Under the pieces are notes generated by a model. It had not been told where the DNA came from and made no database searches. It saw only the letters and a program-made list of their open reading frames with translations. Source: Callorhinchus milii (taxonomy: Eukaryota). From it: a DNA stretch of 64,000 nucleotides. Both the position numbers and the translations under genes were made by a program. Location: assembly GCF_018977255.1 (NCBI RefSeq), contig NW_024704755.1, positions 15,686,001-15,750,000 of the forward strand, given 5' to 3'. Of the stretch, positions 177-59,741 are shown piece after piece (positions within the stretch are counted from its first letter, which is position 1; every line of letters starts with the position of its first letter).

Positions 177-329
177 ACCAAACAAAGGGGAGCCGATAAC
201 AAGATAATTTACAGTGTTCTGGATTTAACAGACTCAAAGAAAACAGCATGCAGCAACATTGGTGTGGAATATTCTCAAATACAGGTGAAAACCACAGCAG
301 ATCAGCAGCTATCTACTGGGAACAAATAG
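177..329 (+). CDS. Gene A: last coding exon of an upstream inhibitory family member (ITIM plus second Tyr motif)
   Basis: Acceptor ttttacag at 176. Phase-0 translation TKQRGADNKIIYSVLDLTDSKKTACSNIGVEYSQIQVKTTADQQLSTGNK* contains IIYSVL (ITIM) and VEYSQI. Homologous to the last exons of D (44846) and E (59574). Confidence 0.8.
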   Translation, partial: TKQRGADNKIIYSVLDLTDSKKTACSNIGVEYSQIQVKTTADQQLSTGNK

Positions 330-2299
330 ACACACAGAAGTAATGCGAGAAGTCAATTACTGGTGCATTTTGTTTTTAGTTCTCCATCCCTATAAAGTAA
401 TGGCTTTGATGCTTTTCAATTAGTGTCTACTTATTTGTGAAAATCCATTGCAGGAAAATATTGATGCTTAATTCTATTCATGTGTACTTATGTGATATTT
501 AGAATCTAGTTTCATGCAAATGTATTAACAGCTCTAATCATGACTAGAAGCCTTGATCGAATAGCTTTTAAATCATCGCACACCCAATTTAAAATTGTAC
601 TAAACAATGAAAAAAAATTATAAAGAGTTAAATAAAGCATATAAGCCGTTTGGCCTCATGAAGTGGTGTAGTGTATTTTCTTAACATTTCAATAAAGAAC
701 GATTGTGAAACATAAATCATGTGGTTTTCTCATTTAATCACTTTGCGTCTTTACTATTGGTAAAACAACACGTGGTATGGGTTAGCTTGAAAGCTGTTCA
801 ACAACATATGGCGCAATTCATTTACCGCAAAGGAAAGGTTAATGTGTAGGCGTTCTAATGGTCATGTGTGTGCTGATATATACCTAACAGGAAGCAACCA
901 AAATTTTGAAATGTGCTATTTCTGATGTATTTCAGTGACACCAAAAGTTCCATTACAAGCGACCCGCTTTCTTATACTAAATATAGACGTTGTTTATTGA
1001 CATCTTTATTAACAGCTTAAGCATTTATTTCAGATCAGTGTAGTGTGGATAGGTGCAGTTATAATGCACAATTTCAATATCAGTTGAACAACAAACACCT
1101 GCTTATATTTTAAGAACAAGTCAATACTGGACATCTTGAAAAATTTCCTGGATCAACATCAGTAAAGCACGGATTGTATAGAACATACACTTCCAATTGA
1201 TAGATCTTCTTTCAAGTTGTCATAAATCATGCTTAGTTTTGGTCAACAGAGTTTCTGACACATAATGCTGAACCCCATTGCTTAATAAAATTGAATCCAG
1301 ACTGAAAGTTCCACCTATCCATACCCCACACGTATGGAAAAGTCCCAATTGTCTGGAATGAAGTGGATACGAGTAGTGGATACAGGAGGGTCGCACCTGT
1401 TTACCTAATTCTGGAAAATATTAGGGCAGGTTAGCAAATGCCAATGTCTCCTTGAACATAAAGCAACAATCCAATTAGTTATTGCAACCCAGTGTCACAA
1501 ATGTGCTCCAGATAAATAAATATAAATTTCCTGAGTTAATAGTTGACTGACATAAATTAAGGAAATAATCACATTTTATTATTTCCAGTTCATCAATCAA
1601 AAACTTTAGGAGACTGTCCAACTTAAAAAGTCCATTTCAGAAATGCTCCTTCTTTAAATATCTGTTGGTGAATGACATTGGTACTAAAAAGGATGGTCTG
1701 TTTCATCTGTTTCATCTCTACAAGTTTCATCTCAGCTGTTTCATCTCTACAAAATTACTTTGTCAATTGCCCTTTTTCACAGTACAGAACATGCTTTAAC
1801 ACAGTATTTTTTTTATTCAGACGAATGCAATGAGACAATCAAACCACACACTGCTTTTACATTCCATATATGGTAAAGTTCATGTCATGCTGAATCCGCT
1901 GTAATACAAAGGAATGGTTGTAAGATAGAGGAAAGCGTAAGCAGAAAATTAATGTACAAATATAATGATATAACCGAATGGTAAACAGTGAATTGTGGTC
2001 CTCGGCACAGCACAAGAATGAAGCAATTATTAAGAGGTGAACGCCTGGTTTAATTGGGAACATCCAAATATTGTTGGACGAAACTCCATGCCTGGACTTT
2101 TAACTCACATAGTCCAGGGTGGTTGCAAGGGACAATGCTGAGGGTGTTAAAGGTCCAATCCCTCAACTTAGATGTTATGCCAAGGTCCCATCTGTCTATT
2201 CCGGTGGAAATTAAAGATCATATGATACAACTAATTAATTTAATACCATGTTATTTTTAATGTTTAATATATGTGGATCTATCACTGCACTGTATTTCC

Positions 2300-2730
2300 G
2301 TGGTCAAAGAGGAACGTCAAGATACAGCCATTGAAAGAAGTGAGGGAGAAGAGGGCAAGTCGGAGGGATTCTGGGATGGAGCTCCAGAGAGTTGGGGCAG
2401 ATAGATTGAAATCTTGACCGCTGATGGTGGGTTGAGTAATGTGTAGGCTGGTGCTTGCTGATCGAATGGCAGGGAAAGTACTGCTGAGGAGGTCTCAGAG
2501 ATATGGTAGGGCAAGAATATGGAGGGATTTGATGGTGAAGGTAAGGATCTTCAACTCGATACATTGGGGGATTGTGGAGCAAATGTAGCAGGGAGACGAT
2601 CTGGACCATAGGTACCTGGACATTATTGCAGAAATGACAAGGGCTGCAATGTTCTGGAGAGTCTGTAGCTTGCTTCAGGCAGAGTTGGACAGTCTGGTGA
2701 GCAGAGCTGGACAATAAATAGAAAGACAAT
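2300..2730 (-). mobile_element. Decayed L2-clade LINE RT C-terminal fragment
   Basis: Nucleotide similarity to the 16327-17150 copy (gagctccagagagttgggg..., cttcaactcgat...). Confidence 0.65.
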
Positions 2731-4739: not shown

Positions 4740-5033
4740 GTCCTGTAGCTCAGTGGTTAGAGCACTTGCCTTTGCAAGCGAAACATCTGGGTTCAATTCC
4801 AGGCAGGGCGAAACCTTGGGCAAGTTTCCTTACTCCACACACCTAATAATAATCCCTCCCAAAAAAATATTAAATTGGTCATTTTCAATCCATGACTGTT
4901 TGTGGGACGCTGCTGTGCGCAATTGGCTGCCACATTTCGGCCACAAATATACAGTCAATTCACTTTACAGTCTACTCTGTGAAGCGCTTTGAAAAGTCGA
5001 GAAAACGTGAAAAGCGCTATATCAAATGCAAGG

Positions 5034-5065
<32 letters not shown>
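4740..5065 (+). mobile_element. tRNA-headed Deu-domain-type SINE inserted in the psi1 V exon
   Basis: A box tagctcagtgg, B box ggttcaattcc, core tgtttgtggga..gctgtgcgcaattggctgcc, (TTA)n tail, short target duplication aaag. Confidence 0.9.
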
Positions 5066-5066
<1 letters not shown>

Positions 5067-5082
5067 AAGCATCACCATCTAC

Positions 5083-5232
5083 CCCCTCCTCGCTCGCTCC
5101 CTCCCTTCCCTCCCCGCACCCTGACCATTTCCCCCCTGCGTGTGTCCTGACCCAACTGTCCAGTGCCTTGGGATATCCTCCCGACGTGAAAAGCGCTCTA
5201 TAAATGAAACCTTGTTGTTGTTGTTGTTGTTG
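5083..5232 (+). mobile_element. L2 LINE 3' end with (TTG)n tail inserted in the psi1 V exon
   Basis: cccaactgtccagtgccttggga..gcgctctataaatg..(ttg)n. Target duplication tac. Confidence 0.8.
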
Positions 5233-6916
5233 TACTGCACCATTCCCTACTTTGAAGATAATTCTTATATAAAGGTAAATTGACAGAAGCAGCGAGAGAG
5301 TGGATACCTACAAACAAGAGCAGATAACGGGAAATGGTTTGCAAGAAGCGATTCCTTCTAGCTTCCAGATTTGAATTACCAAGACTCTGGAGTTGATTTG
5401 GGGGCATTGGTGCTTCAGGGGAAAACAGCAAGAATGAAACTGGATCACATTTAATGGTGTGTGGTAACTGAGAATGCAACACAGAATGGGCCTGTAGCAA
5501 TATTCAAGTTATTGCGTAAAGAAATGTCGTCAAGAGTTATAATTAATGCTTTGAGAAAACCAAACGGTTCCAGCTATTCAAAGATTTGCCACTCATGTAA
5601 TGTTTCCCTACTTCCTACTTGCTATCTATTAATTCCAGGAACGGAATTCATTTAAATTTCTACATTTTATCAATACTATTTAATTACTATTTGAGTAATC
5701 AATACTATTGTATCAATACTATTTAAGATTTACAAGATTAAGGCTTTAATTAAATAATATTTTAAATAAGACAATGGTATTTAAGATATTTCAATGTAAT
5801 ACATTTTAAAACAAATTTGGAGTGGTTCAGCTTCAATGTTGCATATCTCCCTGCTGATATTTTATTCTGTTGTAGTTACTTTTCCTGAGTTTGCGGATAC
5901 TTTTTTTTAAAAATAAAAATTTGGGATTAAGTTAAGGATTTGTATGGTAAGAGCTTTGAAAACCAGGTGTTATTAACTTTTCAAAACATGGAAATGAACA
6001 CCACATCTTTATGCCCTCTATACTACCCATTAAATATATCAGCCATATTGTTGAGAGATCCTTCTGTTGGCCACAATTTCCCACATTCAAGCTTTGTCCA
6101 CCTCTTGAAAATAAAATGTATCTTCCCCCAGTTTCAATTTGTAACTATGAGATGATAGGGTTAATACTTTATTTACGTGCTCACGTAACAACAATTTAAA
6201 CTGTCCAATTAAGACAAGTTAGACGTTCTCTGCATTGAAATATAAAAAGATTTTCTTTTGTGGTAAAACGGAGAGGTAGTGAACGACACACAATGTGTGT
6301 CCTAAGCGCAAAATGCGCTTTATATGATGCATTTATTTACAACTTTACTAATTGCTTTGATATCTATTAACACCCTGCTGTCCATAGAGGAACAAATATA
6401 GCAAGTAATTCGCATCTCATGAAAAAAAGGTAATTTATTAAATACATAATCAAGAATCGAATGTGGCAATAAATACAAAACAGAATAAAATGTCTTCCTC
6501 ATAATGTATTCAGAACGGACTCTATGTGGAAGAGGCGCAGTCCATCCAGAGTGGGGGCTGTTTAAGTATATTATTAAGTAGATTCCAGAGATTGACAAAA
6601 TGCATAGTTACCTTTAAATACCTCCATCGACTTGACCCACTATACCTCTGCAATATCATTTACAACATACTCCACCCGCTCTGTCACTTCTTGCTTTGCT
6701 TCCACCCTCTCTAACTGCCCCCAACCCCATCTCTGACATCTTTCAACCACTCAGTCCTTACCTTCTGGAACTCTCTTTCAACATTGGTCTGTCCAATCTC
6801 TCCCTAACTTCAAAACTTGTCTAAAGACATCTCCTTGACTGCTTTTTAGTCGCTTCTCTCACCTCCTCTCCTTTCTCCTGCTCAAATTGGGTGGTTTCGA
6901 TCTTCCTTGGATTTAT

Positions 6917-7246
6917 CATAATAATAATAATAATAATAATAACAATAATAATCCTTGCATTTGATAAAGCGCTTTTCACGTCGAGAGGACGTCCCAAAGC
7001 GCTTCACAGAACACACTGTAAAGTGAGTTGACTGTATATTTGTGGGCGAACGCGGCAGCCAATTGCGCATAGCAATGTCCCACAAACAGTCGTAGATTTA
7101 TTATTGTTTGTGGTTTTGGAGGGATTATTATTAGGCTGTGTGTGGAGTAAGGAAACTTCTCCAAGGTTTCGCCCTCTGCCTGGAATTGAATTCAGGTCTC
7201 TCACTTGCAAAGCGAGTGCTCTAACCACTGAGCTACAGGACTCCAC
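6917..7246 (-). mobile_element. Full-length young SINE copy
   Basis: Reverse complement of the same head/core/(TTA)n consensus. Confidence 0.9.
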
Positions 7247-8238: not shown

Positions 8239-8319
8239 ATAGGTTCCCAGTTTGATGAGAAGAAAGATAGACAAATCTTTTATGTATATAAGCTGAGTAT
8301 CAATCTTGCTTTAGCTTTA

Positions 8320-9141: not shown

Positions 9142-12100
9142 ATGGCGAGTGTTGTGTTTTACTGTTTCTCTCTCGTGGGGATGCTTTCCACAGGTAAGCG
9201 CTCGGTTTGTCTGCAAATATAGTCGCAGTCGTATTCATTTTTATACTAAACCAAGTGCTCTGGGGCACTACCCTGCGTGAGAGGCGTTATATAAATCCAA
9301 ATTGTTGCAAACAAAGTTCCGTTGCTTTACTTGCATCTCTTTACCTCATGCTTTATATTTTCTCTGTATTCGTTTTCATCGGCTACATATTTTACTCAAT
9401 CAGTATTTGAATTTGTTTTGATAGTTGTTGACGGCACTTCGGTCCAAGTAACTCAACTCCCCAAACACACAACTGTAATCAAAGGTGAAAGCATCACCTT
9501 CTACTGTGCCATTTCCTACTTTGAAGAAAACTCACGTACAAAAGTATACTGGTGGAAGCATGGGGAGAGGGAGTACCTGCAAACACGGCCAGATGCCAGG
9601 AAAATATTTGATATTGAAAAAGGAGGAAGCGGCTTCTTTCAGCTCCTGGATGTGAATCTTCAGGACTCTGGAGTTTATCACTGTGCTCTGGCGTTGGAGG
9701 GAAAAATAGCAAAAAATGGAACTGGATCGAATTTAACTGTATGCGGTAAGTGTTAACCCTTCGCAGAACTGGATCATTGTTATCTTTACATATTACGCAA
9801 ATATATCTAACGCACTATAATCTTAAGAGAATCAAAACTAGACTGAGAACTGCAGGTGTGTATGACATCTACATTGGGAAATTGTGCAGTATCTGAAAAG
9901 GAATGATGTTTCCTGGTTACCTAATTCTGGAGAGCAGAGGTTTGTTGTGTCCCCTGGAGTTTAATCAGATAAAGCCACATACTTGCCAACTCCTTGAAAT
10001 TTGAAAGCACATTTGGCTTCCTGCAATGCTGTGCAGGTAGGAAAAGCCCGACCGGTACCGGTTTGTCTTGAGGGTTAAACAGCAGATGAGTGGCAAGATT
10101 CCCTGCCCCTGTGACTATCTGGGGATCCAGGACAGATCTGGATCATTGCTATCTTTACATATTACGCAAATATATCTAGTAAACTATCCTCTTAAGAGAA
10201 TCAAAACTAGACTGAGAACTACATGTGTGTATGTCATCTACACTAGGAAATTGTCCAGTATCTGATAACAATAATAATCCTTGCATTTGATATAGCACTT
10301 TTCACCTCTTCTAGATATCTCAAAGCATTTTACAGAATATACTGTTGACCGTATATTTTGTGGGCGAAACTCGGCAGCCAATTGCGCACAGCAGCGTGCC
10401 ACAAACAGTCTTGGATTGAATGACCAATGTTGTTCTTTTTCTTGAGGGGTTATTATCAGGCATGTGGAGTAAGGAAACTTCCCCAAGGTTTCGCCGTGCT
10501 GGGGATCGAAACCAGGTCGCTCGCTTGCGATGTGAAGGCTCTCACCATTGAGCTACAGGATTCCACAATTGGAAAGGAATGACGTTCCTAGTTACCTAAT
10601 TCTAGAAAGCATTGGTTGGCAAATGCCAAGGCTTGTGTCCCACTGGAATTTAATCAGATAAAGCTGTATACTTGTCAGCACTTGAAACTTGAAAGCACTG
10701 TCTGACAAGCTTCCTGTTGTTTATACAGGTAGGACAAGGCCCCAGTTTACTTATTTGATGTGCAGGGTTAAACAGAATCTGAGTGGGAAGAATACCTGCC
10801 CTATGACTGTCTGCCTCTAATCCCAGGCTGGCTGGTCTGTCATCAGCAATGCCCAGGAATTTTGCAGATCTGCCAATCTCAGGAACGGAACTACTGACAC
10901 AGAGGATTGACTGAGGTGCAACAGTCTGCTGCTAAACATGTCACAGTGGAGAAAGTTCAGCTGCAAGGAAACTCTGTTAACTCCGCACCCACCCACCCCC
11001 ACCCCTCATACCCTCCCGAAGAGGGTATAAACATGATAAAACATGCAAGTAACCAAACCAACATAAATCAAAGTTCATCAATATCCGTTAGGTGTGTACT
11101 GTAAGTAATTCGAATAGAACTGTCCAAATAACACAATTTAGAGTAGCGTAACATCTCTGGAATGTCCATGTATAGGTGGGAACCATGGAATTCGCAGTTA
11201 AATATGGATATTTTTAAGCAGGTTGTGCTGGTTTTTCGCATTGAGGCCAGCCAATCAGCTGACCTCCAAAAAAATTTGTGGAAGGGAATCCTTACTTTGG
11301 TGAAGACTGAAATAGTAAATAACAGCAGATCATATTTTAATATTTTAATGCCACTCGCACCAGCTTTTTGAATGAATAATGTTGTTTCATTACTTTTGGC
11401 AACTGTGATTGCTGGAGAGTAAAGAAAATGCTATTACCGAGTAAATACAAAATATAGAAATCAGATCAATAATAATAATAATCCTTGCATTTGATACAGC
11501 GCTTTTCATGTCGGGAGGATGTCCCAAAGCGCTTCACAGAACACACTGTAAAGTGAATTGACTGTATATTTGTGGGCGAACGCGGCAGCCAATTACGCTC
11601 AGCAATGTCCCACAAACAGTCGTGGATTGAAAATGACCAATTTATTATTGTTTTTGGATTTGGAGGGATTAGATCAAGTTGTCACAGAGAAATTAATCAG
11701 ATATAAATCGGAATTAAATTTTCCTCAACTGAACAGAAATGGTGTAATTCTGCTCCATTATCTAACCCACAGTTCCACCAACGCCACTGAAGATAATCCC
11801 AAGGTTTACTAAACGTAATGCATCGGTGTCTCTGACTCTTGTGTGTCAAACGGCTGAGTATTACCCGAAGAATCTCATCCTGACTTGGTATAACAGTGTC
11901 ACCGAAATTACAACAGGAATAAATACCACTGAACAGCAGAATCCAGGGGGATTGTATGGAACTTCCAGTTCTATGGAAGTGGCACAGCCCATCCTGAGGG
12001 GGGCTGTTTATACCTGTAAGGTGTCACACATCAGCCTCAAGGCTTCAGAAATTGCCGAATACAAGGTTCAACTTTCTGAACGTTCCGATGAAGGTAGCAT

Positions 12101-12863
12101 GCCAGAAATCCTACTGTTAATCTTAACTGAATTTTCACATGATTATTGCAATTTATCGTAAAGCTCTTGATATTGTATTGTATTACCCAATAGCCTACAG
12201 ACTTCAGATATTGCCAAATATATAGTTCGCCTTCCTTAAAAATGTACCGTACTTAACTTACCAGCAATCTTGTTGTCATCTACTGTGAATTTCAAAATGT
12301 TTGTCAGAATTAATAAAGATGTCATATCTAAATTTTTCTTAAAAAACTTCTACTGGAAGATATTTGAAAGTTATATATTGATTTACAAGTTATTTGCCTC
12401 AAACAATTTAAAATCTCACTAAATATAAAAAATCATCTGAGTTGCGCTCAGGCTGTCACAGTACCATAATAATCACCATCTCATTGTTTTAATAGTGACG
12501 GTATTTTCTACAAAAAAAAACCATTCAGTGGATTCTCCTTACATGAAATTGCAGGACATTGTATTTTTAATCTATAACTGTCTCAAAGATTTTTTAAGTT
12601 TCACGATTTGAAGCTTATAATAGAGCCTTTCATGTCATTCCTTAGAGTAGTCTAAACACTGCATTTCATTTCAAATTCACCATCAATAATGTACAGTCTT
12701 GTGAACCTGTTGTTACTTTGCAGGTTTAGGTGTCAACATCTACGGAATTTCCCGTTTTCCATTGAGCGTGTTGGTAATGATTCTTTTAGTGGTTATCATT
12801 GTGGACCATTTCAGAATCACCCTCTGTAAAGGTAAGACTTTCATTCACGTCACTCTTATGTAA
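9142..12863 (+). CDS. Gene B: V(J)-C1-TM SIRP-like receptor, activating type (TM Arg, no Tyr in tail), ~277 aa
   Basis: Exons 9142-9193, 9425-9745, 11773-12093, 12724-12863 (TM exon read through its donor at 12832). All splice sites GT-AG, phase 1, total 834 nt in frame. TM IYGISRFPLSVLVMILLVVIIV. The 3' end is inferred. Confidence 0.8.
9425..9745 (+). CDS. Gene B V-set exon with J-like G strand
   Basis: 321 nt. VTQLPK..ITFYC..KVYWWK..QDSGVYHC..KNGTGSNLTVC, flanked by tgatag and gtaagt. Confidence 0.92.
10266..10566 (-). mobile_element. SINE in the gene B V-C1 intron
   Basis: Head ..gagctacaggattccac, Deu-type core, tail ataataatccttgcattt. Confidence 0.85.
11470..11670 (-). mobile_element. 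5'-truncated SINE with 7-bp TSD (agatcaa); absent from the paralogous site in gene D
   Basis: agatcaa at 11463-11469 and 11671-11677. The D empty site reads tcagatcaagttgtc. Confidence 0.9.
11773..12093 (+). CDS. Gene B C1-set exon
   Basis: 321 nt. LTLVCQTAEYYPKNLILTW..YTCKVSHISL (C1 motifs FYP-like, W, CxVxH). Confidence 0.9.
12724..12863 (+). CDS. Gene B transmembrane exon (Arg) with short read-through tail
   Basis: Acceptor tactttgcag. GLGVNIYGISRFPLSVLVMILLVVIIVDHFRITLCK, then GKTFIHVTLM* if the donor at 12832 is not used. Confidence 0.75.
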
Positions 12864-13930: not shown

Positions 13931-13949
13931 TGATGAGGCTCTTGATGTG

Positions 13950-35461: not shown

Positions 35462-35990
35462 GTCATTGTTTGCAGGTATCCACCCTCTACCTACTTTCAC
35501 CAGCACGTTCTTAAACTCGATTTGGGTTGAGTGATAGGAACCATGCAGTGGGAGGTCATGATTGTACCTTTGATGACCTCTATGTGTTAGGGGAGTTTAG
35601 TCATTCTGATAAATATACCGTCAACAACTTTCAGAAATACATTCAATATAATTAAAACAAAAGACAGAGACATAGAAACAGAGGCTCGGTTCACTCAATG
35701 TAATAAATAAAAGATCATAAAATATTAATAACATTAATCTATGTTATTTTATAGCAAACTTGCGTAACATAATCACTCACCCAAGGAAATCTTCCCATAA
35801 AAGACAGATACTGTGATATAACATACACCAATATTCTGATCATTGTCTGACAAATCCTGAACTGTTGCTTGTGTGTGATAAAAGGTTGCAGATGTTTGAA
35901 TTGCGACAAGTCACAGTGACTTCCAGTCTTTGTACATTCAGGAGTTATATGTTTTGGTTGGGTGTGATTGCACAGAGGGTTGTCCAGTGA
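35462..35990 (-). pseudogene. psi2: inverted family pseudogene (promoter, ATG-less leader, 5' half of V exon)
   Basis: On the minus strand: promoter resembling gene C (tgcaatcacacccaaccaaaac..ctggaagt), leader ~35834-35781 with donor gtgagt, acceptor tttctgaaag, then from 35627 VVDGIFIRMTKLP*HIEVIKGTIMTSHCMVP..RTCW*K*VEGGYLQT. Confidence 0.8.
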
Positions 35991-40265: not shown

Positions 40266-43200
40266 ATGGCGAGTGTTGTGTTTTACTGTTTCTCTCTCGT
40301 GGGGATGCTTTCCACAGGTAGGTATTTGGTTGAATTAAATAGATACTCGCAGTCGTTTTCATTTTTATACTGAACCAAGTGCTCTGGGGCACTACCCTGC
40401 GTGAGAGGCGTTATATAAATCCAAATTGTTGCAAACAAAGTTTTGTTGCTTTACTTGCATCTTTACCTCGTGCTTTAAATTTTCTCTGTATTCATTTTCA
40501 TCGGCTACATATTTTACTCAATCAGTGTTTGAATTTGTTTTGATAGTTGTTGACGGCATTTCGGTCCAAGTAACTCAACTCCCCAAACACACAACTGTAA
40601 TCAAAGGTGAAAGCATCACCTTCTATTGTGCCATTTCCTACTTTGAAGAAAACTCACGTACAAAAGTATACTGGTGGAAGCATGGGGAGAGGGAGTACCT
40701 GCAAACACGGCCAGATGCCAGGAAAATATTTGATATTGAAAAAGGAGGAAGCGGCTTCTTTCAGCTCCTGGATGTGAATCTTCAGGACTCTGGAGTTTAT
40801 CACTGCGCTCTGGCGTTGGAGGGAAAAATAGCAAAAAATGGAACTGGATCGAATTTAACTGTATGCGGTAAGTGTTAACCCTTCGCAGAACTGGATCATT
40901 GTTATCTTTACATATTACGCAAATATATCTAACGCACTATAATCTTAAGAGAATCAAAACTAGACTGAGAACTGCAGGTGTGTATGACATCTACATTGGG
41001 AAATTGTGCAGTATCTGAAAAGGAATGATGTTTCCTGGTTACCTAATTCTGGAGAGCAGAGGTTTGTTGTGTCCCCTGGAGTTTAATCAGATTTTAAAGC
41101 CACATACTTGCCAACCCCTTGAAATTTGAAAGCACAGTTTGGCTTCCTGCAATGCTGTGCAGGTAGGAAAAGCCCGACCGGTACCGGTTTGTCTTGAGGG
41201 TTAAACAGCAGATGAGTGGCAAGATTCCCACTCACCCCTTACTGCCACCCCCGCTCCAAAGAGGGTAACTATTTTGGCACTATAAACATGATAAACATGC
41301 AAGTAATCAATCCAAATCAAAGTACATTAATATCCGTTAGGTGTACACTGAAAGCAATTCGAACACAACTAGCCAAGTCACACAATTTAGAGTTCTTAAC
41401 ATCTCTGGAATGTCCATGGATAGGTGGGAACCAAGGAATTCACAGTTAAATATGAATACTTTTAAGCAGTTTGTGATGGGTTTCCACATTGATGACCGAA
41501 ACAGAATCCTTACTTTGGTGAAGATTGTCAATAGTAAATAGCAGTCGACTGTGTTTTAATGCCGCCTGCACCAGGTTTTTGCGATGAAGTTATTTACTTA
41601 AATGTGAACTACATTTATAAATAGTAATGTCGACTCATTACTTTTGGCAACTGCGATTGCTGGAGAGTAAAGAAAATGTTATTACGAGTAATTCATTAAA
41701 TACAAAATGTAGAAATCAGATCAAGTTGTCACAGAGAAATTAATCAGATATAAATCGGAATTAAATTTTCCTCAACTGAATAGAAATGGTGTAATTCTGC
41801 TCCATTATCTAACCCACAGTTCCACCAACACCACTGAAGATAATCCCAAGGTTTACTAAACGTAATGCATCGGTGTCTCTGACTCTTGTGTGTCAAACGG
41901 CTGAGTATTACCCGAAGAATCTCATCCTGACTTGGTATAACAGTGTCACCGAAATTACAACAGGAATAAATACCACTGAACAGCAGAATCCAGGGGATTG
42001 TATGTAACTTCCAGTTCTATGGAAGTGGCACAGCCCATCCTGAGGGGGGCTGTTTATACCTGTAAGGTGTCACACATCAGCCTCAAGGCTTCAGAAATTG
42101 CCGAATACAAGGTTCAACTTCCTGAACATTCTGAAAAAGGTAGCATGCCAGAAATCCTACTGTTAATTATAAGTGTCTTTTTCCATGATTAGTTAATTTA
42201 TCGCAAAGCTAATTGCTAAATATTTTTTAAAAATCAACTTTTAGTAAAAGGTATTAGAAATGTAGGCGTATGCGCATTATCTTCCTCGAAAAGTAATGCA
42301 AGAAGACTCATTAAAATATGAAAACTTGAAATCATCAATTTAATAACAGAATCTCTATTCTGGTGAAACCTGGAGTTAATTAAATTATACATTAGTTAAC
42401 AGGCCACAAACATCGTGTTGAGAAAATAAATGAACGTCATGCACCGTAATGTATCGCTTCTTTTTTGTATCTTGCCATTTTACCAGGGTTTGACTATTGG
42501 ATCGTTGGATATGCAGTGGCTGCACTGATTTTTCTAGTAGTTTTAATTATTATTGGGAAGCGATGCAAATGGATGAAATGGAGAGGTAAGAAATATCTGT
42601 TTTTATTGAAATTAAGTGTATTATTTCCATTTTAATTCAATGTTTCAATGAGTAAATGAGACATCCCCGGATTATGCAATGGGAAGAGAGGTTTGAAGAC
42701 TAAATGTCTGTGCAGTCCACTAATGATTATTAAATATTAATCAATTTCAGAATTTGTATTCATTCTAGTCCACACATTATTTTAAATTTCTGTCATAGAA
42801 ATTTAATACATATTTCATTAATTTAGTTTCATTAATTTTAGGCTCCCATAAAGAAATTAATGGATCGCACCGTTCTGGAGAACAGGTAACTTTATATAAC
42901 TTGTCTCAGCAGGTTTGTCACCTTGCAGAGATTGATGGAATAAATAGAGATTATTCCTTATAGATTTTATAACATTTTAACTCATTCTCCTTCGAGCATT
43001 TATACGTCCTCACTTTATAATTTGCGCACAATTATTGAGCACCACGTATAATATAGTGCATTTGCTAGCAGTATATATTATCAACTATAAGTATTGTAAA
43101 ATATTCTCAAGTGATTTTTAAAATATTTTAAACTAGGCAGCTGAAGTTCACTTGTTCATCGCAGTGTTACACTCAGTGTTTACGCAGTAGTGTGAAGTCC

Positions 43201-44974
43201 TGTAACCCTGTGGTCAGAGCACTCGACTCGCAAGGGAGAGACCTGGGTTCACTTCTCGGCAGGGCGAAATGTTGAGCAAATTTCCTTACTCCACATGCCT
43301 GTTTAGCTAACAGTAAGTAGGAACTCAGTTGTTAGTCGATTGGCGGATTGCTTTTTCGGGATAACAATCCTTAAAAAAAAATAATAATTTGGTCACTCAA
43401 TCCATGACTGCTCTTCACAATTGGCTGCTGCGTTTTGCCCACAAATATAGCGAATTCACTTCACAGTATATGCTGTGAAGCGATTTGAGACGTCTAGAGG
43501 TTATGAAAAGCACTATATCAAATGCAAAGATTATTATTAGTGTGTACAGAACTAAAGACAATGAACCAATCATGGAACTACGAGTTGCATTTTACAGACT
43601 GTGCAGGGAGCACACGATGAGATGGCTTATGTCACATTGGATTTGACAAGTTCCCAGAAATCTCCAAGACCTAAATATCAGGAGAGGACAGCGTACACCC
43701 AGGTGAGAAATACTAAATTGAGATATAATTCCTTCAGATCCTAAATCATGGGATTAGAAACTAGAATGAAACTCCAGTTGTTTAACATAATATTATTTCT
43801 GTGCTTCACGCTCCTCAAATCATCTAATTCTGGTTGAATCTTGGAATGCGAGTAAGGCAAATTATTTGACTATAGGAACATTACAGATGAATAATATATG
43901 TCCTTTGGGTACTTAGAAACTGCCTAATAACTGAGTTCCCTCTTCCCTAACATCCTCGTGGAATTTTATAGTAGCTACTATTAATCGTATCTACATGAAA
44001 AGGAGTTGGAATATTTAACTCCTAGTTTTTTTATTAACCAAGCAATGGAAAGGGAAAGCGGTGCTGGAAATTCTGAGTGCATTTATTTGGGAGATTTCTG
44101 AAGTCTGACAACATAATTAAATTAATTACATTTCCAAATATTTGCTTCCCAGACAAAGGGAGCAATTGGTAACAAGCCAACATATGCAGCTCGGGATTTA
44201 TCTGGCTCCAAGAAAATAGGAAAGACTAAACCTACCTCCAAGAGTACAGAATATGCCAAGGTAAGGGTCATCAACCCATGGAGCTAAGAGACAAGAAATG
44301 TTACAATACTACATATCGAAGCTGAAAATTGGTTAATATTGAGAGTCTTCCCTGCCATATATATTGGGTGTCACTTATGGGTACGCCAGTTATATGTTGG
44401 CGTCTCGTCATCACCTGCAGTTATTAGCAATTATTTATTACCTTAGGATTTTTCATTCCACTAAAAATCTGTCTGGTACATTCATATTTGACAAACCAGA
44501 ACCATTTTAATTAACAAAATTAATTGCCATCAACATCTTCATTATTGCAGCATGCGACTACCAGGATGGTAGAAGATGACCTAGATGTACCTTAGTCTTT
44601 TTTCTTATACCAATTCTAATGCTCCTGTGTTCAAAGTAATATCTTGTACCAATCTAATAATGTTTCTTAATCTGGATGATATCTTTATCACACGTTTCAT
44701 AAAAATTATGGCTGCCATATAACTAGAACAAAGACTACCAATGCAAATCTTATAAATGGTATAAATATTTGGCAGAAATGTGGCAGAGTTGCGTAAAGTG
44801 ACTTAAACAAAGAACTAACAGTATTCCGAAATTTCGTCCTTACAGGTCAAACAAGGGGTAAACAAGCTGACTTATGCTGCTCTGGATTTGGGTAGCTCAA
44901 AAAAAACAGGAATGCCTAAATTCAACAAGAATACAGAATATGCCGAGGTACAGATGAAAACAGCAGAGCAGTAG
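40266..44974 (+). CDS. Gene D: V(J)-C1-TM inhibitory receptor with three ITIM/ITSM modules (~392 aa if the C1 frameshift is corrected)
   Basis: Exons 40266-40317, 40547-40867, 41820-42139, 42487-42585, 42842-42885, 43598-43702, 44153-44260, 44846-44974, all GT-AG. The C1 exon is 320 nt (G4 at 41993-41996 versus G5 in B), giving TAA at 42005-42007. Confidence 0.75.
40547..40867 (+). CDS. Gene D V-set exon (318/321 nt identical to gene B)
   Basis: Direct comparison gives three substitutions, one of them nonsynonymous (T/I near the N-terminus). Confidence 0.92.
41820..42139 (+). CDS. Gene D C1-set exon (1-bp deletion as sequenced)
   Basis: Near-identical to the B C1 exon. ccaggggattg versus ccagggggattg in B. 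Confidence 0.8.
42487..42585 (+). CDS. Gene D transmembrane exon (uncharged)
   Basis: GFDYWIVGYAVAALIFLVVLIIIGKRCKWMKWR, flanked by ttttaccag and gtaag. 99 nt. Confidence 0.85.
42842..42885 (+). CDS. Gene D 44-nt juxtamembrane exon (phase 1 to 0)
   Basis: GSHKEINGSHRSGEQ|gtaac. Same length as the gene E equivalent at 58495-58538. Confidence 0.75.
43192..43539 (+). mobile_element. SINE, long subfamily, in a gene D intron
   Basis: Head, extra segment, core and tail all visible. Confidence 0.8.
43598..43702 (+). CDS. Gene D cytoplasmic module 1
   Basis: TVQGAHDEMAYVTLDLTSSQKSPRPKYQERTAYTQ|gtgaga. Phase 0-0. Confidence 0.8.
44153..44260 (+). CDS. Gene D cytoplasmic module 2
   Basis: TKGAIGNKPTYAARDLSGSKKIGKTKPTSKSTEYAK|gtaagg. 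Phase 0-0. Confidence 0.8.
44846..44974 (+). CDS. Gene D last exon (ITIM LTYAAL plus ITSM TEYAEV)
   Basis: VKQGVNKLTYAALDLGSSKKTGMPKFNKNTEYAEVQMKTAEQ*, acceptor ccttacag. Confidence 0.85.
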   Translation, partial: VKQGVNKLTYAALDLGSSKKTGMPKFNKNTEYAEVQMKTAEQ

Positions 44975-52255: not shown

Positions 52256-52299
52256 TAAATAATTCTCTGTGGGGGGAAGCTCCTGATCTTCCTCTCTGC

Positions 52300-53893: not shown

Positions 53894-56800
53894 ATGACAA
53901 TGTTGGCGAGTCTTGTGTTTCAGGGTGCATGTCTATTGGTATTGATTTCCACAGGTGTGTATTCCTTCTTTACCCCAATTTGCCAAAAAGGGACATAGAT
54001 TTCATAATTTTTTTGTGGATAGAATAAATCTGTGTCTTGCTCTGTGAATTACTTTGTCTCTTGCTGTAATTTTTTTTCTAATTAGCATTTGAATTTATTT
54101 CTGATAGTTGTTGACGATAGACTGATCAGAGTGACCCAACAGCCCGACCATGTGGAGGCAATTAGAGGCACTAACGTTACCTTCCATTGTATGTTTCCTG
54201 ATGCCCAATCCAACTCGCGTATAAAAGTGTACTGGTGGAAGCTGGAAGACAATGGAAACCTGCAAGTGCAGCCGGATAAAAGAAAACTGTTTGGGTTCGA
54301 CAGTGACCAAAAGAGCTTTTTTCAGCTCCTAAATGTGAGTTTCCAGGACTCTGGTGTGTATCAGTGTGTTCTCTCGCTTCAGGGGCAAATAGCAGGCAGT
54401 GGACGTGGATCACATCTGGTTGTACTCGGTAAGTACGGTTTCAGTGGAGAACGGAAATATTCCAAATTAGATATTGTGATAAAAATTCTGAAAAAGTGTG
54501 GAGGGTGTTTTCATTATTTTAAGAATATGAAACAATTATTTTAATTTTTTATCCTTTAAAATATATCCTCCTGGGGGCAGGTGGGCTCTGCTCGGAGCTG
54601 AACTAGCTCCAGCATGAAATGTTTAGCAATAGAATATCTGAATCAAGATAAACCTCTGCAATGGTATCGGTAGTCTGGCTCTTGAGCCCGACGGGTCTGC
54701 AGTATTCTGGGGCACTGCTGATAATAATAATATTAATAATTCTTGCATTTGATATAGTGATTTTCACATCTTCTACACGTCTCAAAGCGCTTCACAGAAT
54801 ATGCTGTCAAGTGAATTGACTGTATATTTGTGGGCGAAACGAGGCAACCAATTGCACACAGCAGTGTCCCACAAACAGTCGTGGATTGAAAATGACCAAT
54901 TTATTATTGTTTTTGCCTTTGGAGGCATTATGATCGCCCAGCCTGCCTGACTCATCAGTTTATCGGAAGTTAAATTGTAGATGTGTTCATACAAGATATC
55001 TTTGTGATGTGATTCGAGGGATGTTAACCTACCAAAGACCAATATCAAATGGAAGGATTTTTAAAAAAAAATTATTTAGACCATTTCAAACTCCAAATTG
55101 TTGGTGTTTAAATATAATTTCAGTCATAAATTTAATACACTTAGTTAAATATATTTTCAGTAATGATCTATTTCTTCATTTTACTGAGGAGGAATGCAAT
55201 AGAGCATATCAGCACTGGCTATATTGCTGTTGTAATCGTCTACATGGCTGGAACATTATTTTCTTCTCGGGAATTTAAACCTATAACTAGGAAAAATCAA
55301 GTGTTTTTTTGCTCAAGTTCCATGTAGGGAAAAAAATGAAAAGATTCAATTTGTATTAATGGGGAAACGCAATTGGAATTGTGGAAAACAATATTTTATT
55401 GAGTGGAGATTGAAACATTCGATGACAATGTGTGCTAGCTTTTCATGGTACTTATTTACTTTTGGGGGATTTGTAGTGATAAAGAATGTTTCCGATGACA
55501 CTTTTATAATTGTTATTGATGGCGAACAAATCAATGTTAGACCTAAAGATTTTTTTAAATCCAAAGCAAATAAACCAGAATCAAAATGTTGTGACTGGAA
55601 TGGTGTACAAATCGTAAAAGTTTAATCTCCACCAACTGAATGTAGGTTTGTTATTCTGCTGTACTGTTTGTTCTACAGTTCCTCCAACTCCATTGAAGAT
55701 TTTCTCCAAAGATCCTAAAATAGGTTCACCAGCGCCTCTGACTCTTGTGTGTGAAACAACAGCATTTTATCCTGAGAATCTTAACTTCACTTGGTATAAA
55801 AATGGCACCAAAATTACATCTGGAATAAATATCACTAAACAGCAGAATGCAGAGGGATTGTATGAAGCTTCAAGCTTTGTGGAAGAGAACAAGCCTATCC
55901 AAAGTGGGGTTGATTATATCTGTGAGGTTTCTCACATCAGCCTTCGGATTCCAGAAATTGCCAACTACACAGTTCAGTGTTCTAAAACAGGTAGGACGCC
56001 AACAACCTTACTGTCAATTAATCTTTATTTTTTCACAAGAATATTTCCCACTATTAATTACAGCAAATTATGTAACATTCACTTACTGTTTGCAGGCAAT
56101 CATATATACGTTTTTCTATCAAATACACTTTGCAATATATCCCCTGAAGCATTGTAAGACTTTCTCCTGACGTGAAAGGCACGATATTCAATATTCACAT
56201 TACTCAATATTCACGATATTTATTATTATTTTCTATTATGTCGCTTTACTTGTGCCTCAACACCAACTAATTATATTTGAAAAAGCGTCTTTCATAATCA
56301 TTGGCATGTTCTGCTTGCAACACTAAATGGAGTGAAGTAATGCTGTTTTACTTTTACGTTTGTATTGTCGTTATAGGAAATACGTCCCATCATATACTAA
56401 TATATGGAAGTGCAGGATTGACATTTCTTGTGCTTTTAATCATTGGAATAGCATGTCGATTAACGAAAAGTAAAGGTAAGACACATTCATGTTTTATTCA
56501 GGCTTAAATTTTAGTTTTATGTTAATGTAATACTTCAATGAGTAAATTAATGAATCACTTGGTAGCATGGCCATTAAAGCGGTTTAAAAGATAAAGAATA
56601 AAGCAATGCAATATTTTTTACTGAAATTTACATTGAATTTAGAAATGCAAAACACCAAACTGGTGAATTTAATTAGATGTTTGTTTACAGCAGAAGTTTA
56701 GGCTTGAGAGCAAATATCTCAAGTCTTCTCATATCTATAATTATCAGCAGAAATGTGAGTATAGAAATTTTAGAACTGATGTCAAACATGTCTTGTGTAT

Positions 56801-59741
56801 GGAGTCCTGTAGCTCAGTGGTTAAAAGCACTCGCTTTGCAAGCGAGAGACCTGAGTTCAATTCCCGGCAGAGGGCGAAACCTTGGGCAAGTTTCCTTACT
56901 CCACACGCCTAATAATAATCCCTCCAAAAAACCCAAACAATAATAAATTAGTCATTTTCAATCCACGACTGTTTGTGGGACATTGCTGTGCGCAATTGGC
57001 TGCCGCGTTCACCCACAAACATACAGTCAATTCACTTTACAGTGTGTTCTGTGAAGCGCTTTGGGACGTCCTCCCGACGTGAAAAGCCCTATATCAAATG
57101 CAAGGATTATTATTATTATTATGGTAGCATATATCAACATGGTGGGTGAAAATATTGCGGAATATTCCAGCAAAATGTGACATTAAAGATTTTTTTTATT
57201 AAAAAAACCTTTACCAAGACACAAAGAGGAGGAAACCAGGTTGAAAGAATAGACAGACTGCGATCATGATCGGTTTAAGTCATCTTTCAGCAGCAGCTCA
57301 GAAGGAACAAAATACTTTCTCTCATTGTTCTCTTCATGGTCTGAATGCAGGTTCAGCTTGTGGCACATGACATGTGTCCAAATAGTTCTCTTTCTTGATT
57401 CGGAGCACTGGTATATAGAATAGATTTATTTTGGGGTCATTTGTGGATTTTTTAGTTGCAGGAAGGGAGCTCTCCAGCAGAGAGAAGATTGATGATGGGC
57501 AAGTTTATTTACCAATGCCCGTTAGACTACACAACAACAACTTGCACTTATATAGCGCCCTCCATGCAAGGTAGAGTCTCAGAGCGCTTAACAGTGGCAG
57601 AGCCTGACTCTGAGTAGAAGGTGGGGGAGATAGTCATAAGCACGGTCGAAGAGGAAGGTTTTCAGCAGGACTTGAAAAAGGGGAGAGGGGGAGCAAGGTG
57701 GAGGGACTGAGGGAGAGTGTTCCAGAGGTTCAGGGCGTAATGGCTGAAAGCGCGACCTCCGATGCTGGGGCGGAGGATGCGAGGGATGAGCAGGAGACCA
57801 GTACCAGTCAAACAGAAACACCAGGTGGTGGATTGTCGAGTGAGGAAGTCGGAGAGGTAGGAAGCTGCCCGAGAGTGAAGGGATTTGAACATGAGTGTGA
57901 GGATCCTGATTAAGTAATTTGGTTTTGAGTAAGTCAAGTGCGAATCGTTGCCACTAATTTCCCAACTCAAACTTTGAAGTGCCTAAGCCTCCGCTATGGT
58001 CAAACTGCACCTAATGCTTTCCAGCATCTCTTCAGGGAAAGAGGGCAAGAGTTTACATACAAAATACCGTCATTCCACTTTGCAATGAATCCTCTGAAGC
58101 ACTTTGTGATATCCTCCTGACGTTAAAGGAAAAAACTGTTTTTTCATTCCAGCTGCAGGAAAATTTCAATGTGTAGGTGATGTACGTAGGTGGAACTCGC
58201 AGGCTGATTTGGATAATTTTTGGGTTGGTGATGTGTTTCTCCACATGTCAGATACCAGGCTCACCATAAAATAAGATGCCTAGGTTGTTTTCAATTATTG
58301 TACATTTAATGTATGCTGATCATGAAGATTATGCTGCCCTTATCCTGTAGTAGTAAGCTTTTATATTTTATAAATTGTCCCAGGAAGCACTTGGGCATTC
58401 AAACCATTTGTATTCATTCTACCTGTTTTCTTGGGTATATGGACGACATGGAAATTGAATAAACATTTCACTTTTTCAATTTGTTTCATTTCAGGTTTAC
58501 ACAGAAAGCTGAATGGATGTGACATTTGTGGAGATCAGGTAAAGTACAGAATTAATTAGAGAAGATGTTTTCATGTTACAATGGGGTATGATCATCTGTG
58601 TTATAATGTCATCACAATATTTTGAACAGAAACTGGATATTCTTACCATTGTTAACATCGAATGCTGCATTTATTCTCTTCCATTTCTTATAATTCTTTG
58701 CCCCTTCACTGTTACGTTCAAATGTTTTCTATAAGCTATTCATATGCTTAATATATAGCACATGGTGCAATGCAGCACTGTTGCATAAATCTGTGTAACA
58801 CAATGCAAGTGATATGTTAAATATGTGAAATATAGCAGCTAATCTTCATTTCTATTATCCAGCTTTCTGCATTGCTTTACCAGCAGTGGAGAACAGTGAA
58901 TACAAGGAACCAACCAAGTAACCTGATGTTGTGTTTTGCAGAAAGACCATGAAACAATGTATGAGACAGTGGGATATGTCCCATCTGATTTGAATAGTTC
59001 AAACAAGACCTCGAGAAATATATATCCACAGGAAATGCCAGTATGTGCCAAGGTATACAAAATCCTGATACAGAGCCATTATAACTAATATGATATCTTG
59101 CTATATTAAATACAATTGCACTGACATTTATTCTTTAGGGTAAGCTTGTTTGTGTAATGCGATAGTTTTCCTCCTTCTATATTTCATCCTCTCCTCAGGT
59201 GCTTGTCTGGACTCGGTTACGTTTGCAAAGTAGTGTCCAAATAGTCCAAATAGTTATTCCTCGTGTGGCAGCCTCGCCAGTGAATGTAGCAAAATATGTG
59301 ATGCTGGAGAGATCACCAATGGAACGTGTCCACAGCGAGAATAACACACCACTCCCCAGGGAATTAGCACTGACCACAAACTAAGAGATACCAAGTCTAA
59401 TTGCATTGATCCCCGCCAACTGTAATCGCTGGCTTTATATGTCTGAGTTCAGCATTAAGTGATGCTTTACCAGATGAGAAACAGGATCTGAAGATTCAAA
59501 TAGTTACTTTTGGAGATTTCTAAATGCTGACGAAATGAATTAGTAACTGAAATCTCAACCATTACCTTTACAGACCAAACAAGTGGCAGACGGTAACGTG
59601 CTGACGTATGCAAATTTGAACCTGTCTGGCTCCAAAACAAAGGGAAAGGGAAATCCGAAATGCAGTGACACAAAAACAGAGTATGCCCAGATACACGTGA
59701 GAAACCATAGAGCAGCAGAACAGACAAGGAATCAACATTAG
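53894..59741 (+). CDS. Gene E: intact V(J)-C1-TM inhibitory receptor, ~371 aa
   Basis: Exons 53894-53954, 54108-54428, 55679-55990, 56377-56475, 58495-58538, 58942-59052, 59574-59741. 1116 nt in frame. Uncharged TM. Tail motifs TMYETV, LTYANL, TEYAQI. Confidence 0.82.
54108..54428 (+). CDS. Gene E V-set exon
   Basis: 321 nt. VTQQPD..VTFHC..KVYWWK..QDSGVYQC..GSGRGSHLVVL|gtaagt. Confidence 0.92.
54721..54930 (-). mobile_element. 5'-truncated SINE in the gene E V-C1 intron
   Basis: Core and tail. Confidence 0.8.
55679..55990 (+). CDS. Gene E C1-set exon
   Basis: 312 nt. LTLVCETTAFYPENLNFTWYKNG..YICEVSHISL..TVQCSKT. Confidence 0.92.
56377..56475 (+). CDS. Gene E transmembrane exon (uncharged)
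   Basis: GNTSHHILIYGSAGLTFLVLLIIGIACRLTKSK|gtaag. 99 nt, as in D. Confidence 0.85.
56798..57121 (+). mobile_element. Full-length young SINE in a gene E intron
   Basis: Matches the consensus. Confidence 0.9.
57531..57925 (-). mobile_element. L2 3' fragment in a gene E intron
   Basis: GGRAFS..LWNTLPQSL.. followed by the 3' tail. Confidence 0.8.
58495..58538 (+). CDS. Gene E 44-nt juxtamembrane exon
   Basis: GLHRKLNGCDICGDQ|gtaaag. Homologous to D 42842-42885. Confidence 0.75.
58942..59052 (+). CDS. Gene E cytoplasmic module
   Basis: Acceptor gtgttttgcag. KDHETMYETVGYVPSDLNSSNKTSRNIYPQEMPVCAK|gtatac. 111 nt, phase 0-0, homologous to the D modules. Confidence 0.65.
59574..59741 (+). CDS. Gene E last exon (ITIM LTYANL plus ITSM TEYAQI)
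   Basis: Acceptor acctttacag. TKQVADGNVLTYANLNLSGSKTKGKGNPKCSDTKTEYAQIHVRNHRAAEQTRNQH*. Confidence 0.85.
   Translation, partial: TKQVADGNVLTYANLNLSGSKTKGKGNPKCSDTKTEYAQIHVRNHRAAEQTRNQH

Follow-up and report, generated by a model that had tools for sequence, protein, structure and literature searches.

A Tandem Cluster of Non-rearranging, Single-C1, SIRP-like Paired Receptors in the Cartilaginous Fish Callorhinchus milii

Introduction

Innate discrimination between self and non-self in mammals depends centrally on paired activating and inhibitory receptors of the immunoglobulin superfamily (IgSF); in the oldest jawed vertebrates, such receptors have been little charted. A 64,000-nucleotide stretch of the Callorhinchus milii genome (hereafter the window; approximately 15,686,001-15,750,000 of scaffold MU249845.1, assembly GCA_018977255.1) carries a tandem set of genes that join a V(J)-type immunoglobulin (Ig) domain to a C1-type domain and a transmembrane (TM) segment, and it raises the question of what these genes are: relatives of the tetrapod SIRPs, which in mammals act as “don't-eat-me” receptors, an independent receptor family, germline-joined antigen-receptor genes, members of some other family of V- and C-domain receptors, or the decaying edge of a cluster whose functional members lie elsewhere. 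A preliminary description drawn from the letters alone had placed the DNA in a probable cartilaginous fish, which is borne out by the 100% identity of window bases 1-8942 to the C. milii scaffold. We conclude that the cluster probably encodes germline-joined, non-rearranging, type-I V-C1 paired receptors of cartilaginous fish whose nearest known relatives are the tetrapod SIRPs. As judged from sequence, it is well supported that the family is built, and would work, like SIRP; that it is orthologous to SIRP is plausible and unproven.

Results

Gene Structures in the Cluster

The window is AT-rich (GC content about 0.38) and contains no N runs. Four V-type and four C1-type coding blocks, alternating and all on the plus strand, were located by tblastn with two long Ig-like open reading frames (ORFs) as queries. 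They belong to four units, named B, C, D, and E, each with leader, V, C1, and TM exons, and are accompanied by the last exon of a fifth gene, A, and by two V relics, one on the plus strand and one on the minus strand. Of the two limits between which the family had originally been drawn, 177 is the base at which the last exon of A starts, and 59741 is the final base of the stop codon of E.

Upstream of each V exon lies a leader exon with an ATG start, a hydrophobic stretch, and a phase-1 GT donor. The V exon is 321 nt long in all four units, opens with the last three leader codons, and encodes in its 3′ part a J-like strand (consensus NGTGSxLxV), after which a phase-1 donor in the same exon leads directly to the C1 exon. 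The C1 exon measures 321 nt in B, 312 nt in C and E, and 320 nt in D, and in every gene it is followed, at a distance of 350-2600 nt, by a single hydrophobic TM exon. Splice sites are canonical throughout the exon models of B, C, D, and E (acceptors AG, donors GT). The common plan of leader, 321-nt V, 312- or 321-nt C1, and TM exons proposed earlier for these four genes thus holds in its coordinates, splice sites, and lengths, apart from the 320-nt C1 exon of D. The tails of the inhibitory genes, which had not been listed before, are assembled from two to four small exons; the homologous NCBI models P0217 and P0218 of C. milii keep the same order of tail units and thereby support the exon joins indirectly.

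Domain Types and Absence of Rearrangement

Pfam recognizes the V-set and C1-set domains above their cut-offs, the latter with 50-54 bits against a cut-off of 21, and the C domain remains below the cut-offs of the CD80-like C2-set_2 (16.8 bits) and the butyrophilin (BTN)-type Ig-C domain C2-set_3 (18 bits). The cysteine pair of the V domain (C48 and C107 in the numbering of E) and the G-x-G of the J strand are invariant or nearly so across the family. An AlphaFold2 model of the gene E product, computed from a 20-sequence alignment, has two confident Ig domains (predicted local distance difference test, pLDDT, 80-93), a TM helix at residues 236-261, and a disordered tail; Foldseek against the PDB returned only Fab light chains, which confirms the two-domain V-C1 fold and nothing more. 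Every gene in the window has one C1-set exon, in agreement with the single C1 domain first ascribed to the family.

The V-J-C1 layout and the light-chain-like fold could be taken to mean that these are germline-joined Ig light-chain or T-cell receptor (TCR)-type genes of a rearranging locus, as the NCBI name “immunoglobulin lambda-1 light chain-like” suggests; germline-joined Ig genes are known in sharks. We consider this extremely unlikely. Pairs of heptamers and nonamers resembling recombination signal sequences (RSS) number zero in the 64-kb window, where 0.5 would be expected by chance; the cluster has no unjoined V, D, or J segments; and its genes possess TM exons and tail exons with ITIMs (immunoreceptor tyrosine-based inhibitory motifs). 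Moreover, the trees described below set the C1 and V clades of the family apart from the references for Ig kappa, Ig lambda, IgH, TCR, and UrIg2, so that the family does not group within a known rearranging locus, and this reading is close to being refuted. The genes are accordingly non-rearranging V(J)-C1 genes, as initially proposed, with the V domain and the J-like strand in one exon, a direct splice to C1, and no RSS in the window.

A cysteine closes the V exon (LTVC, followed across the junction by VPPTPL) in A, B, C, D, and several other C. milii paralogues (9743-9745, 20472-20474, and 40865-40867 in the window). Gene E has no cysteine at the end of V and instead carries one in the stalk (YTVQCSKTG, approximately 55970-55980). 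These extra cysteines at the V-C1 junction or in the stalk of E, beyond the two intradomain pairs, could form interchain disulfides.

Inhibitory, Activating, and Tail-Less Members

All exons given in this section lie on the plus strand. Gene E is the intact gene of the inhibitory type. It comprises the leader exon (53894..53954), the V exon (54108..54428, 321 nt), the C1 exon (55679..55990, 312 nt), a TM exon of the inhibitory type that encodes the predicted helix (56377..56475), a first cytoplasmic exon of 44 nt (58495..58538), a second of 111 nt with the motifs TMYETV, VGYVPS, and NIYPQE (58942..59052), and a last exon (59574..59741) in which the ITIM LTYANL is followed 25 residues on by the immunoreceptor tyrosine-based switch motif (ITSM) TEYAQI and then by the stop. 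These seven exons give an uninterrupted ORF of 371 amino acids ending exactly at 59741, and the ITIM/ITSM tail claimed for E is indeed present in LTYANL and TEYAQI, with TMYETV in addition.

Gene D is likewise of the inhibitory type and is organized into leader (40266..40317), V (40547..40867, 321 nt), C1 (41820..42139, 320 nt), and TM (42487..42585) exons, followed by a 44-nt cytoplasmic exon that passes from phase 1 to phase 0 and matches protein P0009 (42842..42885), a second cytoplasmic exon (43598..43702; MAYVTL ... TAYTQ), a third that is a duplicated unit with a degenerate first motif (44153..44260; PTYAAR ... TEYAK), and the last exon (44846..44974; LTYAAL ... TEYAEV, then the stop). 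The tail unit is thus triplicated, with one exon per ITIM-x22-23-Tyr unit (43598-44974); other family members have one to three such units (three in P0002, one in P0021), and it seems to be through exon duplication that tails in the family lengthen and shorten. The C1 exon of D has lost 1 bp in a G run, which reads GGGGG in B (11946-11950) and GGGG in D (41993-41996), and the loss shifts the frame into a stop. Since the same exon is intact (QQNPGGLYV) in the Ensembl protein A0A4W3HMH6 (P0009) from an older assembly, the loss may reflect an error in reading the homopolymer, allelic variation, or a true pseudogene. The tail predicted for D was therefore found, with LTYAAL, TEYAEV, and two further units upstream, in a gene whose C1 frame is broken (320 nt, not 321).

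Gene A enters the window only with its last cytoplasmic exon (177..329; TKQ...IIYSVL...VEYSQI...GNK, then stop), which is 100% identical to the C-terminus of the Ensembl proteins P0006 and P0011. The rest of the gene lies upstream of the window at L001 10001-15463. Its penultimate exon (L001 15371-15463) ends with an in-frame stop at L001 15461-15463, about 1.06 kb before window base 1, in the context RPKHP, stop, ERTVYAQ, and the NCBI model P0015 terminates there after a single VAYVSL motif; the older-assembly protein P0006 reads through (RPKHPEARTVYAQ) and continues into the exon in the window. In this assembly, the exon of A in the window may thus be untranslated, which qualifies the ITIM/ITSM tail attributed to A: the motifs IIYSVL and VEYSQI are there, downstream of a stop. 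Located 5′ of gene A, outside the window at L001 7081-7302, is a further partial V exon that matches the initial two thirds of the V exon of B and D almost perfectly (VVDDTSVQVTQLPKHTTVIKGESITFYCAISYFEENSHTKVYWWKHGEREYLQTRPDARK).

Gene B has a leader exon with a phase-1 donor (9142..9193, MASVVFYCFSLVGMLST), a V exon with the J-like strand KNGTGSNLTV that matches Pfam V-set (9425..9745, 321 nt), a C1 exon (11773..12093, 321 nt; C1-set, 50.6 bits), and a TM exon of the activating type with a phase-1 donor (12724..12831, GISRFPLSVLVMILLVVIIVDHFR). The latter reads GISRFPLSVLVMILLVVIIVDHFRITLCK, with arginine at the outer membrane boundary (codon 12753-12755) and Asp-His at the inner one. No ITIM-type exon was found downstream of this TM exon as far as gene C, and comparison with the paralogues by tblastx and tblastn gave no match for a last exon in 12832-19700, poly-A signal counts being uninformative in AT-rich DNA. 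The 3′ end of B is thus left open at the phase-1 donor of the TM exon; the TM arginine ascribed to B is present and the residues seen contain no tyrosine, as had been stated of the tail, the last exon of which was not found. The TM pattern R/K...(I/L)VDH of gene B also occurs in four other chondrichthyan proteins and is conserved in proteins of C. milii, Heptranchias, Scyliorhinus, and Mustelus, which indicates that both the activating and the inhibitory backbones predate the chimaera-shark split.

Gene C consists of leader (19785..19839), V (20154..20474, 321 nt), C1 (21885..22196, 312 nt), and TM (24781..24884) exons, the last of which is homologous to the TM exon of B and contains an internal stop (VSLFTLSVLVILILMVIIVDYCRFQPF, then stop). 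Leucine stands where B has arginine, and the stop comes seven residues past the membrane, so that C, which as described at the outset has neither a TM arginine nor an ITIM tail, looks by sequence like a decayed form of the activating type. The leader-V-C1-TM ORFs of B and C are intact, with canonical splice sites. The best protein match of B is the D protein P0009 (91% identity), and C and E best match paralogues with 47-61% identity in a collection of 5.8 billion proteins.

Paired receptors are defined by neighbouring genes with near-identical ectodomains and opposite signalling modules, and B and D form a textbook pair of this kind, with an activating TM segment in one and an ITIM tail in the other. 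The DNA of B and D is about 96% identical from about 90 nt before the ATG to 72 nt past the C1 exon (9051-10103 with 40179-41229, and 11668-12165 with 41715-42210), and nothing is shared beyond. Their V exons differ by one amino acid (nonsynonymous and synonymous divergence dN 0.004 and dS 0.029). A near-identical ectodomain joined to unrelated 3′ parts points to recent duplication or conversion onto an activating and an inhibitory backbone, and the mix of inhibitory, activating, and tail-less genes announced in the preliminary description is best seen in this pair, with its shared ectodomain and opposite signalling ends. The V-C1 intron of B (2027 nt) harbors two copies of a short interspersed element (SINE; 10265-10569 and 11468-11671) that are absent from the otherwise 96% identical intron of D (952 nt); either they were inserted into B after the ectodomain duplication or they were lost from D.

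By analogy with known receptors, the three types would act as follows. In the inhibitory members (E, D if its frame is intact, and the older-assembly allele of A), Src-family kinases would phosphorylate the tandem ITIM-x22-25-ITSM units, and the phosphorylated tails would recruit phosphatases of the SHP-1/SHP-2 type through their two SH2 domains, much as SIRPalpha does. The activating member B, with its short tail, would join through its TM arginine, and perhaps also the aspartate, an adaptor of the FcRgamma/DAP12 kind carrying the immunoreceptor tyrosine-based activation motif, and members of the C type may bind ligand without signalling. The receptors are presumably expressed in leukocytes, and the locus would serve innate recognition.

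Divergence of the Ectodomains and State of the Copies

Outside the B/D pair, paralogues are separated by dS of 0.35-1.26 and dN of 0.2-0.44, and pairwise omega (dN/dS, with the broken codon of D masked for this analysis only) is 0.35-0.67 for V and 0.37-0.78 for C1, elevated and in all cases below 1. For the V exons of B and D omega is 0.14, a value of little meaning given how few substitutions underlie it. Since domain-wide dN/dS gave no omega above 1, positive selection is not claimed. Column entropy across the family peaks in the FG loop, which resembles the third complementarity-determining region (CDR; 2.5 bits), and in the BC and C′-C″ loops, whereas the C, F, and G strands vary least (about 0.9-1.1 bits, with 0.9 for C and F); such diversity in CDR-like loops suggests several ligands, or ligands that vary. 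The characterization of the locus as rapidly evolving is thus moderately supported by dN, by omega values of 0.35-0.78, and by the variability of the CDR-like loops, and stops short of a domain-wide omega above 1. The window genes group with other C. milii genes in the trees (95/91), which indicates a lineage-specific expansion.

Two V pseudo-exons with stops, found by tblastn at 5194..5532 (plus strand) and 35455..35679 (minus strand), are the relics that had been noticed in the locus. With the frameshift in D, the stop in A, the loss of the TM arginine and tail in C, and the lack of annotated proteins for B, C, and E in the databases searched, where neighbouring paralogues do have one, they could suggest that the window is a decaying cluster edge in which most copies are dead or unexpressed, functional members lying elsewhere. 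This is rather unlikely, given that E retains an intact seven-exon ORF, that B and C keep their leader-V-C1-TM frames and canonical splicing, that omega stays below 1 in all pairs, and that the defect of D falls in a homopolymer of an exon that is intact in the older-assembly protein.

Distribution and Annotation of the Family

Single-sequence and profile searches of a word-indexed database yielded strong matches from chondrichthyans only, that is, chimaera, sharks, skates, and rays (Callorhinchus, Heptranchias, Heterodontus, Scyliorhinus, Mustelus, Carcharodon, Cetorhinus, Stegostoma, Chiloscyllium, Mobula, Amblyraja, Hypanus, and Hemitrygon). The word-indexed profile search found no non-chondrichthyan relatives above the noise formed by MUC18, so that an exhaustive search was needed to reach the SIRPs. 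Such a search with HMMER against 1.84 billion cluster representatives returned 221 with E<=1e-30, and the best 150 of these are, by local domain parsing, nearly uniform V-C1 proteins with a TM segment, with or without ITIM/ITSM motifs. Among the architectural variants, the skate protein P0068 (Amblyraja radiata, XP_032892405.1) has V-C1-C1, TM, and ITIM, which is the layout of SIRPalpha. P0090, P0121, P0136, P0144, and P0172 are further variants; several models consist of V, TM, and ITIM parts without C1 and may represent exon-skipping isoforms.

Annotation pipelines have given family members contradictory names (SIRPalpha-like, SIRPbeta1-like, tapasin-related, Ig lambda-like, MHC class II beta-like, CD276, and NCR3LG1-like), and automatic names for these genes are at present unreliable. 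Full-text literature searches brought up no account of SIRP-like receptors in sharks, an earlier one in subscription journals not being excluded; the family is machine-annotated and apparently undescribed.

Relationship to SIRP

The exhaustive search was ranked over ten named matches below the level of the family. SIRPalpha of a bat (504 aa) and of a corvid (502 aa) head this list, with a match that runs from C1 over TM to the tail's end, and SIRP-like proteins of a lizard and a lungfish rank next. A profile-profile alignment (hhalign) of the family with bat SIRPalpha has a probability of 99.5, an E-value of 7e-23, and 339 aligned columns. It is collinear: V is paired with D1, D2 is skipped, C1 is paired with D3 and TM with TM, and both Tyr-pair units are aligned with those of SIRPalpha (ITYADL…TEYASI and LTYADL…SEYASV). 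The spacing of the tail tyrosines is 23-14-23 in the family versus 24-17-26 in bat and corvid SIRPalpha, with family values ranging over 22-25 residues within a pair and 12-17 between pairs. The family C1 profile scores SIRP D3 at 46-47 bits.

Maximum-likelihood trees of the C1 and V domains included family members, retrieved SIRP domains, the UrIg2 C1 domain from a PDB alignment, and human Ig, TCR, major histocompatibility complex, B2M, NKp30, CD8, PD-1, and CTLA4 references, the human ones written out by hand rather than retrieved. The family is monophyletic in both trees (C1 100/99, V 96/89), with weak sister relations (86/63 and 82/77). In the V tree it lies outside the Ig and TCR V domains, and in the C1 tree IGKC, IGLC, TRBC, and UrIg2 C1 form a separate weak group, apart from the family clade.

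Several points weigh against a SIRP affinity of functional receptors. The SIRP per-domain scores are low (V 13-22 bits, C1 27-47 bits) and no better than that of human Ig lambda C (44.6 bits). The family stands outside the tetrapod SIRP D1 clade (100/98) and the D2/D3 group (83/83), the deep nodes being unresolved, and since it is not nested within SIRP clades, orthology is unproven. ITIM/ITSM motifs with a spacing of about 25 residues also occur in PD-1, BTLA, CEACAM1, and others, so that the family tail could be convergent. On the side of the genes themselves, this assembly has a frameshift in D and a truncating stop in A, and the models of B, C, and E come from DNA only, the databases searched having no annotated protein of their own with at least 90% identity.

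The points drawn from scores, trees, and tails fit an alternative in which the genes form an independent chondrichthyan V-C1 family, for example an offshoot of the pre-rearrangement, PRARP, or UrIg lineage with a generic ITIM/ITSM tail, whose likeness to SIRP is convergent or reflects shared IgSF ancestry. It draws further on the PDB, in which shark UrIg2 outranks SIRPalpha as the best sequence match of the E ectodomain. We regard this alternative as serious and unlikely: the hhalign match to SIRPalpha is collinear over the whole chain and takes in two Tyr-pair units whose spacing follows the same pattern, SIRPs stand first among the named non-chondrichthyan single receptors matched in the exhaustive search, and the C1 domain of UrIg2 itself falls with the C domains of Ig light chains and TCR beta, apart from the family. 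PDB profile searches with V only or C1 only were rejected as a family discriminator, their rankings being dominated by multi-Ig chains (titin, IgA, IgE).

Another family of V+C receptors with ITIM-type tails (B7/butyrophilin, a cartilaginous-fish CEACAM, or a tapasin-related group) might also be considered. CEACAMs have been reported in cartilaginous fishes (PMC5112662). The NCBI names “CD276 homolog” and “NCR3LG1-like” point in this direction, as does a weak group (82/77) of the V tree that unites the family with NKp30, CTLA4, and a frog V-C1-V-C1 protein. Such an assignment is very unlikely, since the C domain matches C1-set and neither the C2-set_2 nor the BTN Ig-C profile above cut-off, the V domain keeps the canonical cysteine pair and the J-like NGxG..L.V strand, and SIRPs are the top named matches in the profile search. 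To our knowledge, these V-domain features are missing from the N domains of mammalian CEACAMs and from the V domains of B7 proteins.

Thus, we propose that the nearest known relatives of the cluster are probably the tetrapod SIRPs. The SIRP likeness first suggested for this locus is supported by tetrapod SIRPalpha/beta proteins ranking first among the non-chondrichthyan single receptors of the ten named matches and by the collinear alignment that includes the double ITIM tail; the trees leave orthology unresolved.

Extent of the Cluster and Repeats in the Window

Family genes are found on MU249845.1 from 15.257 to 15.746 Mb, and the cluster therefore spans at least 0.5 Mb. Gene A is located at 15.679-15.685 Mb, and the paralogues P0001 (15.257-15.277 Mb), P0007 (15.48-15.49 Mb), P0050 (15.55-15.56 Mb), and P0019 (15.596-15.599 Mb) are encoded on the opposite strand. 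The 10-kb flanks of the annotated paralogues contain no non-family gene.

The SINE copies mentioned above belong to a tRNA-derived family of about 320 bp that has at least 13 copies in the window, on both strands and 75-97% identical; in addition to the two in the intron of B, they occupy 4739-5053, 6924-7248, 8320-8571, 8571-8896, 17653-17974, 25121-25343, 32670-32998, 49167-49494, 54721-54934, 56800-57122, and 63505-63683. A tRNA-Ala-like head is still readable by ARAGORN in two of them (4740-4810 and 56804-56875). Retrotransposon ORF fragments of the long interspersed element (LINE) type are located at 16200-17200 (minus), 27700-28150, 50680-50826 (minus), 52123-52752 (minus), and 57531-57970 (minus). 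They show a recurring motif, ITSRLDY.NSLLAGLP, and a weak RVT_1 match at 52123-52752, and one LINE fragment is fused into the MetaClust protein model of paralogue P0026. About 1 kb of low-complexity simple sequence coding for Ser, Leu, Pro, and His (51400-52350), with strong GC skew, gives rise to long spurious plus-strand ORFs. Past gene E, the ORFs at 61617-62806 (e.g., 62510-62806, IPRIPLLPNDSQFEFKSLQFPVRVCFTMSINKAQRQSL) resemble the C-terminal part of a helicase of the Helitron/PIF1 type, and may represent one; Pfam gave no match.

Discussion

At the level of sequence, the family shares with SIRP (SIRPalpha/SHPS-1, SIRPbeta1, and SIRPgamma) a non-rearranging V domain with a J-like strand, a C1-set domain, a TM segment, two ITIM-x~24-Tyr units, and the grouping in one cluster of inhibitory members, activating-type members with a basic TM residue, and tail-less ones. 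It differs in having one C1 domain instead of the three-domain V-C1-C1 layout, apart from the skate protein P0068, and in that each Tyr-pair unit sits on its own exon in one to three copies. The activating TM segments differ as well: that of the family has arginine at the outer boundary and a conserved inner Asp-His, whereas SIRPbeta1 has a mid-membrane lysine.

Teleost NITR, KIR, LILR/PIR, CD300, and CEACAM1/3 likewise form tandem clusters in which genes with ITIMs stand beside genes with a charged TM segment and the ectodomains are similar, and NITR V domains carry a J-like motif too. However, we know of none among these that joins V(J) to a C1-set domain, the second domain being I-type, C2-type, or absent. 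From B7 and butyrophilins the family is distinguished by its J-like strand and by a C1-set domain rather than a CD80-like or BTN-type Ig-C domain, and from CEACAMs by the invariant or nearly invariant V cysteine pair and the C1-set second domain.

Among cartilaginous-fish genes, UrIg and UrIg2, non-rearranging VJ-C1 genes of sharks, resemble the family in that a C1 domain comes after a germline VJ exon. The UrIg2 product is a dimer-forming heavy chain of antibody-like V-C1-C2-C3 build (PMC12227049), whereas the proteins of the family are of the V-C1-TM type and end in ITIM tails or have an activating TM segment, and the work on UrIg and UrIg2 makes no mention of SIRP (PMC12227049). NKp30, PRARP, and UrIg are cited as non-rearranging VJ genes in a paper on the shark major histocompatibility complex (PMC10751288), and SIRP is listed among the IgSF members with a joined VJ (PMC11599192). 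As they are cited in these two papers (PMC10751288, PMC11599192), the PRARP genes are non-rearranging joined-VJ IgSF genes discussed as relatives of antigen-receptor precursors.

A bolder interpretation, which we hold to be doubtful, is that the V(J)-C1-TM genes are the cartilaginous-fish SIRP lineage in its ancestral two-domain form and a living, signalling-competent model of the pre-rearrangement receptor chain, one that perhaps pairs through its unpaired cysteines (at the V-C1 junction in B, C, and D, in the stalk in E). For the present, the genes are best classified as a multigene family of SIRP-like paired receptors with a single C1 domain in cartilaginous fish, machine-annotated and apparently uncharacterised.

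A large family of paired receptors thus exists in all three cartilaginous lineages, the chimaeras, sharks, and rays, and it combines the two domain types of antigen-receptor chains, a joined VJ and a C1, with a double ITIM tail in the style of SIRPalpha. The B/D pair offers a clean example of how ectodomain exchange produces paired receptors, and the family as a whole provides a testable candidate for the deep origin of SIRP and a point of comparison for UrIg, PRARP, and NKp30 in the debate on the antigen-receptor precursor.

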